From: Podarcis tiliguerta
Taxonomy: Eukaryota
Length of the DNA stretch: 64,000 bases
Direction: 5' to 3' (one strand)
NCBI GenBank assembly: GCA_965153285.1
Contig: OZ229116.1
This document shows positions 6,217 through 60,872 of the stretch, one piece after another. A program made the position numbers and the translations under genes. Below the pieces are notes generated by a model, which was given only the letters and a program-made list of their open reading frames with translations, was not told the DNA's origin and searched no databases. Within the stretch, counting starts at the first letter, position 1. Every line of letters begins with the position of its first letter.

Positions 6217-6560
6217 AGGACGTGGGTGGTGCTGTGGGTTAAACCACAGAGCCTAGGACTTGCCGATCAGAAGGTCGGTGGTTCGAATCCCCGTGACGGG
6301 GTGAGCTCCCGTTGCTCGGTCCCTGCTCCTTCCACCCTAGCAGTTCGAAAGCACGTCAAAGTGCAAGTAGATAAATAGGTACCACTCCGGCGGGAAGGTA
6401 AACGGCGTTTCTGTGCGCTGCTCTGGTTCACCAGAAATGGCTTTGTCATGCTGGCCACATGACCCGGAAGCTGTACGCCGGCTCCCTCAGCCAATAAAGC
6501 GAGATGAGCGCCGCAACCCCAGAGTTGGTCACGACTGGACCTAATGGTCAGGGGTCCCTT
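6217..6560 (+). mobile_element. Sauria SINE (Squam1), full length
   Basis: GGACGTGGGTGGTGCTGTGGG head, B-box GGTTCGAATCC, typical body; 12-bp TSD TAGCCTAGAGCA (6205-6216 / 6561-6572). Confidence 0.92.
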
Positions 6561-6570
6561 TAGCCTAGAG

Positions 6571-36105: not shown

Positions 36106-36250
36106 GCACCTGGATAGCTCAGCTGGTTAGATAGTGGGGCTGATAATGCCAAGGTTGCAGGTTCAATCCCCGTAAGCGACAGCTGCCTATTCCTGCAGTG
36201 CAGGGGGTTGGACTAGATGATCCTTAGGGTTCCTTCCAACTCTATGATTC
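36106..36250 (+). mobile_element. tRNA-Ile-headed SINE with CR1-type 3' tail
   Basis: Head aligns to tRNA-Ile (TAGCTCAG.TGGTTAGA...CTGATAA.GCCAAGGT.GCAGGTTCAATCCCCGTA); tail GGGGGTTGGACTAGATGA...CTTCCAACTCTATGATTCT. Confidence 0.82.
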
Positions 36251-37274
36251 TCTTTCGCCACAGTCAACACCATTGCATCATGCTACGAACCACTGATCCT
36301 GAAACATTTTCATACAGATTAGTTGTTAGGAACATTTGACTGCCCAGATGTCGCTGAACCACAGCTCCCATCATCCCTGGCCATCAGCCATGCTTGCTAG
36401 GGCTGATGTAGTACAGCAACATCTGGAAAGCTAAAAGTTCCCCACTCCTGTGTTAGAAGAACCAAAGAAGGCCTCAGATTCAATATACCCATCTTGTGTA
36501 TGGCTTTTTCTCCACACCACCCACCTAACCCCACTTTAGCAAGGTACTTCATTATTACATGAATAGAATGAAGATTATCACTATCATTATTACTATAAAA
36601 TGTATTGTTAAAATTCTTATAGCTCAATCTGAAAAGAAATATTTGAAATAGAAAAGGTATTCTGAGTTTTAAATTTAACAAGCGTTATGTTAAAGCCTGC
36701 AAAATACATTTAAGTGCATTGAAAACTGGATAGGCTATTATGAAAGAAAATAAAAGGTGCTAACTAAATTGTCTACATTTGGTTGTCTCAGTTATTGACT
36801 TATTTTGTCTTCATGATTGTATAGTAACACAATGCAAACAAGCTAAGCTTCTCGCACAGTACTGAACAATAAGTATTGACAAAAATGACTGCGGTTGCCA
36901 CACCACATTCTATTTGCTATTTTGTAAGAATGTTCGCAATCAAATTCTCTTTTCGCAAAAGAAAATGACTGCCTCACAGATGGATAAGTAAAGCCTTAGC
37001 CAACCTCCCAACCTTCAAATAATCAAAAGCTGTTACAAGTTTCAACAAGCTTTTCTTCAAGCTGTAAGATGTTGCTAGAAGTAGAGTGAAGCTTTTATAG
37101 GAGTACTGAATTGTTCAGCATTCAGATCTGCCTTCCGTTGAACAAAAGCTTTCGATAAGAAGTACTGCAGGAGGCCTGGAATCCTAGGACTTGAACCCCA
37201 AATTTAGGAGGTCAGAGGGTAGATTCCTCTCCCACCCCTGAGGAACATTGTTTGCTTGTAAATATGTGTAGTAC

Positions 37275-37322
37275 GCGTGCTTCGCGTGTACGAGGCCACG
37301 GGTTCAATCCCCGGCATCTCCA
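37275..37322 (+). pseudogene. 5'-truncated tRNA-Ala(CGC) retrocopy (positions 26-73) followed by trailer GGTG-TTTT
   Basis: Anticodon arm CGTGC-TTCGCGT-GTACG, variable loop AGGCC, T-loop TTCAATC, 3' acceptor strand CATCTCC-A; no D-arm or A-box. Confidence 0.85.
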
Positions 37323-37330
37323 GGTGTTTT

Positions 37331-37694
37331 GGGACGTGGGTGGCGCTGTGGGTTAAACCACAGAGCCTAGGACTTGCCGATCAGAAGGTTGGCTGTTCGA
37401 ATCCCCGCGACAGGGTGAGCGCCCGTTGCTCAGTCCCAGCTCCTGCCAACCTAGCAGTTCGAAAGCACGTCAAAGTGCAGGTAGATAAATAGGTACCACT
37501 CCGGCCGGAAGGTAAAGGGCGTTTCCGTGTGCTGCTCTGGTTTGCCAGAAGTGGCTTAGTCATGCTGGCCACATGACCCGGAAGCTGTCTGCAGACAAAC
37601 ACCAGCTCCCTCGGCCAATAAAACGAGATGAGCACTGCAACCCCAGAGTCAGTTACGACTGGACCTAATGGTCAGGGGTCCCTTTACCTTTACC
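37331..37694 (+). mobile_element. Sauria SINE, full length; shares one TSD pair with the upstream tRNA fragment
   Basis: GGGACG head, (ACCTTT)n tail; TSD TATGTGTAGTAC at 37263-37274 and 37695-37706. Confidence 0.93.
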
Positions 37695-40600
37695 TATGTG
37701 TAGTACAAACACATACGTGAAGTCAACATACGTGAAGTCCTTTGAGCATGCAGGAAAAAGTAATTATTTTTTGCTGAAAGGCAACTGTGGTCTAAATGAT
37801 TCCACCACCATACAGAGCTCTTAAATATGGATTATGTCCATGGCCTAGGTCAGCATATCACAAGGTGTGAATACAAGGTCAGGTCAATAGCTGTGAATAC
37901 CAATACTAACTTTCTTCAACAGACATACTTGTTAAGGGGAATAAATATAGCCCAGGATAAGTATCACAAATAGCCTCCTAAAGTTCAAACAATTCAGACA
38001 TACAACTGAATGCAAAATTATGTGGAATTTTAGTTTTAACTTCATAAATGTGGAATGTTCAATGATAATATACAATTGCATGTCTGATGGATGATTTAAG
38101 ACTACAAAGAAAACACGCTTATCTGCCTCACAGCATACAATTTAAATTGAACCTGACACACATGGTTCTGCCAAACAAGCCTTTTCAAAGCAGCTGAGAA
38201 GATATTTGATAGGAAAACAGGCAGCAGCCCACTAAGGGGGTCTTTGAACGTTGAAATAAACATTCAAAGTTGGGGAATTGATCAAAGACATGCTGATAGC
38301 TGAACAAAGTTGACACATCACTTTCCAGTCAGACCCTGCTATGCAAGAACAGCTAAAATAAAAATTTGATTCTGTTGTGTTTAAAAAATGATCAAACCCT
38401 AACCTTATTTTATTTGTAATATTTATGCTGAGCACCTGTGGTCTGAAGAATAGAAAGATATAAAAGCCTGCAACATTTCCACAAACATATTTCCTGCATA
38501 TCCAGCAACAGTGAAAAGCAATTCACCAAGGCAGCTACCTTGAAGAAATATGTAGAGTGGAACTCATGGCTAGATGCTGATGATGAAAATGAAAATGTAT
38601 TAGGCACCTCTGGGTAACTTTGGGTGGAAGGTCCTTTGAGTACAAATATATCCCAACCTACAGACAATGCCATGGACTTTTAGCTAGGGTGCCACAAACT
38701 TGTCTACAATGCTTTTATGCTGAAAGGAAGTAAAAGACTGGTCACAAGGATGCAATACCATGTAATGTGGGATAGTGAAGATGACTGCAGTGTGTGTGTG
38801 TTTCAATGAAGCTACATTGGTGCAACCCACAATCTGCCTCTGTTCATACTCTTAGTCCATTCACTCCATTCTGTGTTGTGGCTTTGGGTAGAGAAATCTT
38901 AGTCACACTGTCTACAGGCAGTGTTTTAGCTCCACCCCCTAGTGATGCTCTTACTAGAAGACTCCTGTCTGACAACCAAGAGGAGGTACTTCCCAGAATT
39001 GAAAGAATGCCCCATCCTAGAACTACTAGATAGATCACTCTGTTACTAGCCAGCCAGGCAGGGATGAGTTGGAAAGCTGGACAGGCCCTCCCCATAGCAG
39101 TTCAACACTACCTGTAGCCAAGAGTAGGTTTGACTGCAGATGGAAACAACTGCCTTTGCCAGCAAACTTCATAGGAGAGAAAGGGAGTCTCTGCCCTTCG
39201 ACTTGCCTGCTGATCTGAATTATGCTTACACAAAGGAGAAGCCTTTTTTCTGTAGGAACTGCCTGACTTTGAAATACCCTCCCTGGAGAGGTTCAATTGG
39301 CATTATCATCTTTTTGATGCCTGCTTTTTGCTCATGAAGTTTAAAAGGGTTACACTTGTTTTTGATGCATTTTTTTTTAGCTGTTGTCTTTTAGTTTTGT
39401 TTTTGCTGGGGTTTTGTTTTTTTAATGATCATGCTTCACTTTTATTTTATTTGGTTATTGTTGTCAATTTCCTTGGAATCTGTTTGGATGAAGGGTGGCT
39501 TAGAATGTAATTAATTAATTAAACCATTTTTTCTACCATAGCTCTGGAAGGGGAGAAGTGCAACAATATAAACAAGCGTGGCCCCTTCCGTTGTTGGCTC
39601 AGGAACCACATAAAGGAATCAGCAACCATCCCACCAACTTTTAAATTTCAAGATTAATGTGGCACTGAAACATAGTACTCTATGGACACTGATGGGACAA
39701 TCATATTGGCAAGCCTGTTGGGTTTTACATTGACTGGTAATGTAACAAACATCTATGCCACTGTCCCTTTGCCGACCTATAATGCTCCAATCAACACTGC
39801 AAGCTGCATTAACTTCCAAAAGGGTTTTTTTCTGCCAGAGGGTTTTGGAGAAAAAAAGCTTATGGGAAATGGGGGGATAGACTTACTTCATTTCCCCCTC
39901 TGTTGTGCCTTTCAGCAGTCATTTAGAGAGTTAACTTTGCTGAACTCAAGCAAATTGGATTTGTGCAGATAGCAGCCCTATCCCTTTCCTGGACACGGTC
40001 AATCTAATTAAAACAACAGTTCTTCTAAGAGACCTTTTATATCCTTCCCTGGTTCTACATGTTCACTTCCTCATTGGAAGAAAGAAAGAAAAATGACTCG
40101 AAAGATGGAAAAACCCAGGGTCACTTTGCTTTGCTCACCAGATATGGTTACGAACAACCTTCCTGAAATAATATTACCTAAACGATTATTGTAGAGAAAA
40201 AGATTAACGTTTTGAATGTTTAACCTTACCTTTCTGGTTCACTTGATCCCATTTATTTTCATAGAACCCACTTATACTAATAATAATGGCTGTGGCATAA
40301 TAGATTAAATAATGGTAGAGCTGACCTCTGCCTTCTTAACGTGTTGAATTACTTCATTCGCTGTATATTATAGGCTGAAAGAGAAGCTTAGCAGTAGTCC
40401 TCTAAGGTAAGGACTTGTCTTGAGGGCAAACCATGTTACACGTAACTGTCTGAACAGTCTTTATTTTTATTTTTTAAAGCAATTTTAGGATTCTACATAT
40501 TTTAGCAGAGGATATGATACTTAAAAACTCATCCTATCCTTTGCTAAAGCTATCCCTCTTTATGCAATTGCAGATGCCTATTTATAAAAGGAAATTACAT

Positions 40601-40862
40601 ACTGGGACCTTGCATGAAGGAAGCAATGCAAAGGGGCAGTGCTGAGCAGGAAAGGGTTAAGCATCACTCATTTTTCCACTCAAAATGGCATGAATATTTT
40701 TCATTTTTTTAAAAAAAATGCAGTGGATTCACTACTCTCATTTGCATGTAACATGCCTTTTAACTAAAGCCAGGGCAACCCTGCACACAGGCCCCCCCCC
40801 CCCTTTCCTTAATTTAGCCTCTGTTAGTTTTGATATTTGGTTAACAGTTACATTTTTGGGAT

Positions 40863-41223
40863 GGGACGCGGGTGGCGCTGTGGGTAAAAGCCTCAGTGCC
40901 TAGGACTTGCCGATTGAAAGGTCGGCGGTTTGAATCCCCGCGGCGGGGTGCGCTCCCGTTGCTCGGTCCCAGCGCCTGCCAACCTAGCAGTTCGAAAGCA
41001 CCCCCGGGTGCAAGTAGATAAATAGGGATCGCTTACTGGCGGGAAGGTAAATGGCGTTTCCGTGTGCTGCGCTGGCTCGCCAGATGCAGCTTTGTCACGC
41101 TGGCCACGTGACCCGGAAGTGTCTGCAGACAGTGCTGGCCCCTGGCCTCTTAAGTGAGATGGGCGCACAACCCTAGAGTCGGACACGACTGGCCCGTACG
41201 GGCAGGGGTACCTTTACCTTTTT
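40863..41223 (+). mobile_element. Sauria SINE, full length, distinct CpG-rich subfamily
   Basis: GGGACGCGGGTGGCGCTGTGGG head, ACCTTT tail, TSD ACATTTTTGG (40850-40859 / 41225-41234). Confidence 0.92.
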
Positions 41224-41679
41224 AACATTTTTGGTTACTGTTGGTTAAGCAAACCAATTAATGAACAGATACACATCGGTGTTTGATCCCTTGGTGATAG
41301 AGAAAGGTAGATGTGTGTGTGGGGGGGGGAATCTGTTGATTCACTGGCAGAAACAAACAGAAAGCATCACAATAGAATAGTGTAAAGATGATAGGTTGTT
41401 TTGCAGCAATATGCCTCATATTCTGCAATGTTACGTTCAGAAGAAATGATTGACTTTAAAAATAAAATAACGGAGATTTTTTTGTCCACATGAAGTTACT
41501 TGCTACATTATGTACAAAAATGATTTGAAATAATTTAAATGCGAAGTTTGCCTATATTTAGGGTTTGGAAAAAATGTACTGGAGTATGGAACTATAGATT
41601 TATAATTTATAAATATACAAAGGTTTCAAGAAAGTATTTCTTTAAAATTAGAAATTCAAATTCCAGTTGTAAAATCATT

Positions 41680-42586: not shown

Positions 42587-60374
<17,788 letters not shown>

Positions 60375-60739: not shown

Positions 60740-60872
60740 NNNNNNNNNNNNNNNNNNNNNNNNNNNNNNNNNNNNNNNNNNNNNNNNNNNNNNNNNNNNN
60801 NNNNNNNNNNNNNNNNNNNNNNNNNNNNNNNNNNNNNNNNNNNNNNNNNNNNNNNNNNNNNNNNNNNNNNNN
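60740..60872. other. Assembly gap (133 N)
   Basis: Run of N. Confidence 1.

Follow-up and report, generated by a model that had tools for sequence, protein, structure and literature searches.

Chimeric retrocopies are the main natural evidence for template switching by the reverse transcriptases (RTs) of long interspersed elements (LINEs), a process that has been invoked for the birth of short interspersed elements (SINEs) and for the change of their heads or tails. The documented cases are almost all L1-driven and mammalian. U6/L1 and other small-RNA/L1 chimeric retrocopies have been described (Buzdin et al. 2002, as cited in PMC5729268) and catalogued (PMC13174262), and 21 primate chimeras of transfer RNA (tRNA) and LINE-1 were recently reported (PMC13174262). 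For PittSINE, a CR1-mobilised element derived from TguSINE1, replacement of the head by template switching was proposed (PMC5729268), and tailless retropseudogenes of unprocessed tRNAs indicate that a LINE RT reaches unprocessed tRNA transcripts in the nucleus (Schmitz et al. 2004, as cited in PMC5322556). A full-text literature search yielded no report of Bov-B chimeras. Here we analysed a stretch of 64,000 nucleotides from the lizard Podarcis tiliguerta (assembly GCA_965153285.1, contig OZ229116.1), which is called the window throughout, and in which a piece of a tRNA-Ala(CGC) and a complete Sauria SINE are joined within a single target site duplication (TSD).

Our results indicate, with good support, that the tRNA piece and the SINE entered in one insertion event. 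This had been claimed in an initial annotation of the same DNA, and it is borne out by the exact TSD, by a Bov-B/Sauria signature at the start of the TSD, and by the presence of the piece beside the 5' TSD in two related species. The initial annotation had also described a 12-bp repeat that brackets the tRNA piece, GGTG-TTTT and the Sauria SINE. Reading of the window gave the same parts in the same arrangement, and only the start of the SINE had to be moved, from 37332 to 37331. The features of the locus are as follows:

37251 to 37253, plus strand: TTT (the Tn of the Tn-TA target signature), lying 10-12 nt before the first base of the TSD
37263 to 37274, plus strand: 5' TSD, TATGTGTAGTAC, which starts with TA and whose last C may equally be tRNA position 25
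37275 to 37322, plus strand: tRNA-Ala(CGC) positions 26-73 (48 nt, without CCA), comprising the anticodon arm, the variable loop, the T arm with B box and the 3' acceptor strand with U70 and discriminator A73
37323 to 37326, plus strand: 3' trailer GGTG, as read from the sequence
37327 to 37330, plus strand: T4 terminator (TTTT) of RNA polymerase III (Pol III); the tRNA-derived part ends at its last T
37331 to 37694, plus strand: full-length Sauria SINE, GGGACGTGGGTGGCGCTGTGGG… to …CCCTTTACCTTTACC, with its own tRNA-like head containing A and B boxes and with a Bov-B-type 3' end
37681 to 37694, plus strand: (ACCTTT)n tail of the Sauria SINE, scored as the tail repeat (CCTTTA)2.5
37695 to 37706, plus strand: 3' TSD, TATGTGTAGTAC, an exact repeat of the 5' TSD

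The repeat TATGTGTAGTAC occurs only twice on both strands of the 64-kb window and cannot be extended, the two copies being preceded by A versus C and followed by G versus A. AAA stands directly before the 5' TSD and AAACAC directly after the 3' TSD. Recurrence of a 12-mer up to 200 nt upstream of a 364-nt element, the length of the focal SINE, was found in 105 of 200,000 random placements in the window, in a test that scored this recurrence alone and in which the repeat need not abut tRNA homology. A single TSD encloses both parts, with the repeat at the outer borders only. At the internal junction, where GGTGTTTT meets the GGGACG with which the SINE begins, no matching repeat was found at the 3' side, and no TSD belonging to the SINE alone is present (GGTGTTTT versus TATGTG). 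Both parts lie on the plus strand, and the tRNA piece runs to the 3' terminus of its RNA, at the last T of T4.

In this layout the locus resembles the U6/L1 chimeras, which likewise combine a small Pol III RNA on the 5' side with a retroelement on the 3' side, in the same orientation and within one TSD at a LINE endonuclease motif, and which are also joined at the oligo-U 3' end of the small RNA. It differs from them in the machinery, which here is RTE-clade Bov-B in a lizard and there L1 in a mammal, in the first template, which is a complete SINE and not a 5'-truncated L1, and in the second template, a pre-tRNA that is itself 5'-truncated. The primate tRNA/LINE-1 chimeras, too, carry a tRNA co-inserted with a retroelement, in their case inside TSDs of 9-19 bp, but they contain mostly antisense 5' halves (1-37), which were attributed to twin priming with tRNA halves (PMC13174262), whereas the lizard chimera has a sense copy of the 3' part (26-73) and of the trailer that follows. 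Twin priming does not fit the lizard locus, since opposite orientation of the parts would be expected from it, while the single orientation seen here is expected for a template switch or a ligation (PMC13174262).

The formation of PittSINE is proposed to have involved a jump of the RT from a SINE RNA to a tRNA during target-primed reverse transcription, giving a tRNA-SINE fusion within one TSD, as at the lizard locus (PMC5729268). The founder of PittSINE is itself inferred and known only from its descendants, in which a complete, promoter-bearing tRNA head replaced the old one. In contrast, the lizard locus is the raw product of one event, in which the whole old SINE was kept, the tRNA is truncated, and a terminator lies between the two. 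The tailless tRNA retropseudogenes, as they are summarised in PMC5322556, are stand-alone, L1-primed, 5'-complete and 3'-truncated, the opposite of the lizard piece.

Taken against these systems, the locus is a two-RNA insertion of a rare but already known kind, akin to the U6/L1 and tRNA/L1 chimeras. As a clean single-event case from a lizard, it adds the RTE/Bov-B machinery, and with it a further LINE clade, to the known range of the phenomenon, and it puts a Bov-B ribonucleoprotein beside unprocessed nuclear tRNA transcripts. The chimera is nevertheless a dead end, which can neither found a SINE family nor turn into a newly headed SINE: the A box is missing (tRNA positions 1-25 are absent), and a T4 terminator stands between its parts. 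The suggestion in the initial annotation that such a copy shows how SINEs could acquire new tRNA heads was therefore overstated, all the more so as head switching has already been published (PMC5729268). The value of the locus is that of an anecdote and of a search template for a genome-wide census, not that of a new mechanism. If the Bov-B RT does routinely jump from SINE 5' ends to neighbouring Pol III transcripts, this would supply raw material for the turnover of SINE heads in squamates.

The target site carries the marks of the Sauria/Bov-B partnership. Sauria SINEs end in an (ACCTTT)n tail and have Bov-B as their partner LINE (PMC13295347), and their insertions show a Tn-TA signature in which the TSD begins with T followed by A, about 10 nt downstream of TTT (Nakatsuka and Ohshima PMC13295347; Nishiyama and Ohshima PMC6007223). 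The focal TSD begins with TA and has TTT at -12 to -10, matching the published signature. Two control Sauria copies in the window have TTT at -13 to -11 and TSDs of 10-12 bp:

6218 to 6562: intact Sauria copy with the TSD TAGCCTAGAGCA (12 bp)
40863 to 41221: intact Sauria copy with the TSD ACATTTTTGG (10 bp) and GAT at its 5' junction

Judged by these sequence features, the outer repeat lies where a Bov-B-type nick would be expected, while the internal junction is devoid of them. The TSD that a SINE would need in order to have landed behind a tRNA gene, TCCAGGTGTTTT, has no TA start and no TTT upstream. Two further repeats were noted around the 3' TSD. Together with its flank (37695-37715) it forms a 7-bp inverted repeat, TATGTGT … ACACATA, with a 7-nt loop, which is probably incidental, and just after it, at 37711-37739, lies a perfect 15-bp tandem duplication (ACATACGTGAAGTCA, 1.9 copies).

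To place the tRNA piece, a comparison set of 28 environmental eukaryote contigs was used, which had been fetched with a loose pattern that picked out 29 gene copies. ARAGORN called tRNA-Ala(CGC) in 27 of the 28 contigs and none in L019, in which the gene is cut off at the contig end. Against these real genes the piece aligns as G26 to A73, and the best gene, in contig L014, is identical to it at 44/48 positions. Two of the four differences form a compensatory pair (G28:C42 versus A28:T42). The remaining two are G37 and A49 in the piece, at positions where all 29 genes have A37 and C49 and which the search pattern had left free. The piece bears the marks of tRNA-Ala(CGC), namely a CGC anticodon in a 7-nt loop, the U70 of the G3:U70 identity pair, A73, and a T arm with the B box GGTTCAATCC. 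ARAGORN called no tRNA at the piece when it was run on the window, because tRNA positions 1-25 are absent. In Rfam, 37296-37322 matches the alanine-tRNA-like 3' end of transfer-messenger RNA, as a truncated match only; matches in the window to SNORD37 and STnc490 were at chance level and were discarded.

The tRNA part has the appearance of a Pol III transcript before processing, and this reading is supported. It has no CCA, and its 4-nt trailer followed by T4 has the same form as in most real tRNA-Ala genes, where a trailer of 0-5 nt precedes T4 or more. Both the precursor-like appearance and the assignment to tRNA-Ala(CGC) positions 26-73 had been put forward in the initial annotation and are upheld, the assignment by the 44/48 match to a real gene. 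The same source had named a better fit to a tRNA-Ala SINE head than to a true tRNA as the result that would speak against it. An old copy of a tRNA-Ala-headed squamate SINE lies in the window at about 58300-58475 (head …TTCGCATGCAGAAGTTCCCAGGTTCAATCCCTGG…, body …GAGAGCCATTGCCAGT…), and its head (element at 58300-58470) agrees with the piece at only 31/42 positions. The T stem is CCAGG/CCTGG in this SINE versus the tRNA-type (A/C)CGGG/CCCGG in the piece, and the piece is followed by GGTGTTTT and not by the body of the tRNA-Ala SINE (…CTCCAG-body with GAGAGCC.YTGCCAGT). Derivation of the piece from the head of a tRNA-Ala SINE family was rejected on the grounds of the lower identity (31/42 versus 44/48), the type of T stem and the terminator.

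The SINE that follows is an ordinary member of its family. Four further Sauria copies are present in the window, and the focal SINE aligns to them over its full length. To examine its first base in more copies, Logan contigs of four species (organisms A, B, D and E) were aligned to positions 36900-38100 (1201 letters). In each run, 478-834 other SINE copies begin their alignment at 37331 and 164-255 at 37330, which identifies 37331 as the normal first base of the family. The letters upstream of these other copies are AT-rich and agree only at 0.34-0.37. Since these flanks are unrelated, the chimera does not represent a SINE subfamily, and a chimeric subfamily was excluded as an explanation. 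In the same-species run, positions 37277 and 37284 are found at single-locus depth, in the contig of the locus only, which likewise speaks against a family of such chimeras.

Two observations concern individual Sauria copies. The focal SINE carries T at 37394, a position that is occupied by G in most copies of all four species and corresponds to the first G of the B box (GGTTCGAATCC); the change probably weakens the SINE's own Pol III promoter. In the copy at 40863 (borders within 40850-40865 and 41225-41236), three extra letters, GAT, stand between the TSD ACATTTTTGG and the first base of the SINE, which fits an untemplated addition at the 5' end of the RNA.

The same contigs were used to follow the locus in relatives. 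Organism A belongs to the same species (0.94 of sampled words). The contigs on the left side of the insertion are as follows:

Organism A, run X15: one contig matches 36900-37328 with zero differences
Organism B, run X2: one contig covers 36900-37356 with 11 differences and bridges the TSD to the tRNA piece
Organism E, run X9: one contig covers 36900-37329, and its tRNA piece differs at 37277 (G>A) and 37284 (G>T)
Organism D, run X8: one contig of 2411 nt with alignments at 36900-37274 and 37722-38100, which are separated by 408 letters versus 447 in the window

The 5' TSD TATGTGTAGTAC is without listed difference in all four organisms, and the tRNA piece stands directly behind it in organisms B and E. 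The contig of organism B enters the SINE by 26 letters, which is below the 31-letter rule for counting that junction. In organism E no difference is listed at tRNA position 37 (37286). In organism D the left alignment reaches precisely to the last base of the TSD, 37274, and 37277 and 37284 are uncovered, as would be expected of an allele that lacks the tRNA piece.

On the right side, the contigs of organisms B, D and E stop at 37722 and continue with 442, 408 and 391 letters, respectively, that are unlike the window. These coordinates suggest that the three share a segment of about 393 nt, located between 37721 and 37722, without counterpart in this genome. For organism B, the extra letters can be resolved into 393 + 27 + 22 letters of SINE tail, which is the expected break of a k=31 contig. 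For organism D they resolve into 393 + 15 letters, which fits an empty site plus the segment of about 393 nt. Judged from coordinates, with the intervening 408 letters unread, organism D may thus carry the empty site. Under the single-event reading, an empty allele would contain TATGTGTAGTAC only once, with AAACACATACG directly behind it. From the differences in the flanks a near-star tree was obtained, AB against DE, and therefore presence in A, B and E together with absence in D is possible with one gain.

As to how the two RNAs were joined, we favour, with modest confidence, an end-to-end template jump by the Bov-B RT from the 5' end of the SINE RNA to the 3' end of the pre-tRNA; the jump itself and the identity of the enzyme are what we infer here. 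The insertion would have been one event of target-primed reverse transcription by the Bov-B (RTE-clade) LINE machinery, opened by an endonuclease nick at a canonical TTT-N10-TA site. The RT would have started in the (ACCUUU)n tail of a Sauria SINE RNA, copied this RNA in full up to its first nucleotide, and then jumped end to end onto the …A73-GGUG-UUUU 3' terminus of a nearby primary tRNA-Ala(CGC) transcript, which would have been unprocessed and therefore nuclear. Copying would have continued back to position ~26/25, where synthesis of the cDNA would have stopped, and the end of the cDNA would have been joined to the target, possibly via a one-base C overlap. End-to-end template jumping is a known property of non-LTR (long terminal repeat) reverse transcriptases, as described for the R2 RT. 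Such a jump predicts exactly the junction that is observed, which consists of two natural Pol III transcript ends in the same sense, the last U of T4 and the first base of the SINE.

Several points weigh against this reading. No extra untemplated nucleotides are present at the tRNA/SINE junction, though they are frequent with jumps, and the case consists of a single locus. The empty site in organism D is deduced from coordinates and not seen. A source locus with a gene and a SINE in tandem may exist; metagenome contigs contained no exact match to the tRNA 3' end with GGTGTTTT attached, and metagenomes are the wrong place to look for a lizard gene. In the same-species run, the contig breaks off at 37328, exactly 30 letters past the locus-specific A49, and this k=31 break gives a weak hint that the T arm, the acceptor and GGTGTTT also occur elsewhere in the genome, although it does not separate the models. 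Contigs of a parent gene were absent among the same four-species contigs, where contigs of tRNA genes are short and were perhaps filtered out, and no inference was drawn from this.

An identical anatomy would result from read-through, in which a Sauria source copy lies directly behind a tRNA-Ala(CGC) gene, Pol III passes the weak T4 and ends at the SINE tail, and the co-transcript is retrotransposed with 5' truncation at about position 26. A run of four T is the minimum that terminates vertebrate Pol III, and it is leaky, and the break of the same-species contig at 37328 is a hint of a second locus sharing the tRNA 3' end and GGTGTT. We consider this history unlikely, however. The source SINE would have had to insert exactly at the terminator's last T, and the site there, TCCAGGTGTTTT, lacks the Tn-TA signature. 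Sibling copies would also be expected, and none was seen among the hundreds of SINE 5' junctions per genome, and in the same-species run 37277 and 37284 are covered only by the contig of the locus.

Ligation of the two RNAs before reverse transcription, pre-tRNA 3' end to SINE RNA 5' end, would have given the RT a single fused template and predicts the same end-to-end, same-sense junction. For U6/L1 chimeras, ligation by RtcB figures as one of two models under discussion (PMC13174262). This route appears quite unlikely for the lizard locus, because both RNA ends would have the wrong chemistry for RtcB unless they were processed further. RtcB joins a 2',3'-cyclic phosphate or 3'-phosphate to a 5'-OH, whereas a Pol III primary transcript ends in a 3'-OH and a SINE RNA begins with a 5' triphosphate.

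It is very improbable that an older tRNA-Ala pseudogene or SINE head came to lie beside a later SINE, with the 12-bp repeat being fortuitous, or that DNA of a tRNA gene was captured as filler during repair of the 5' junction: a tRNA-Ala-headed SINE family is present in the genome (58300-58470) and filler DNA is known at LINE 5' junctions, but the SINE lacks a separate TSD, the 12-bp repeat runs from the canonical nick signature right up to the start of the tRNA homology, the piece is far closer to true tRNA genes than to the SINE head, and its last letter coincides with the last T of T4, an RNA terminus rather than a DNA break at some arbitrary point.

Two details of the tRNA piece invite a tentative suggestion that goes beyond the template jump, namely that an RTE-clade RT captured a modified nuclear pre-tRNA whose modifications left fossil traces in the retrocopy, in which G37 would record inosine-37 and the 5' end at 25/26 a stall at m2,2G26; we regard this as doubtful. 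G37 fits the inosine-37 of tRNA-Ala read as G, which is a lead only, from one site and post hoc. No difference from G37 is listed in the relatives that carry the piece, and all 29 real genes have A37. A49 has no comparable explanation by modification. The 5' end of the piece is ambiguous by one base, the last C of the TSD being equivalent to tRNA C25, and the evidence for a stop at m2,2G26 is weak, since G26 was copied, and C25 maybe as well, while a hard stop would have ended the copy at 27.

Elsewhere in the window, another tRNA-derived SINE-like element (…GGATAGCTCAGCTGGTTAG…GGTTCAATCCCCG…GGGGTTGGACTAGATGATC…) lies at 36110-36250, 1 kb upstream of the chimera, and a run of 133 N, representing an assembly gap or masked sequence, is found at 60740-60872.

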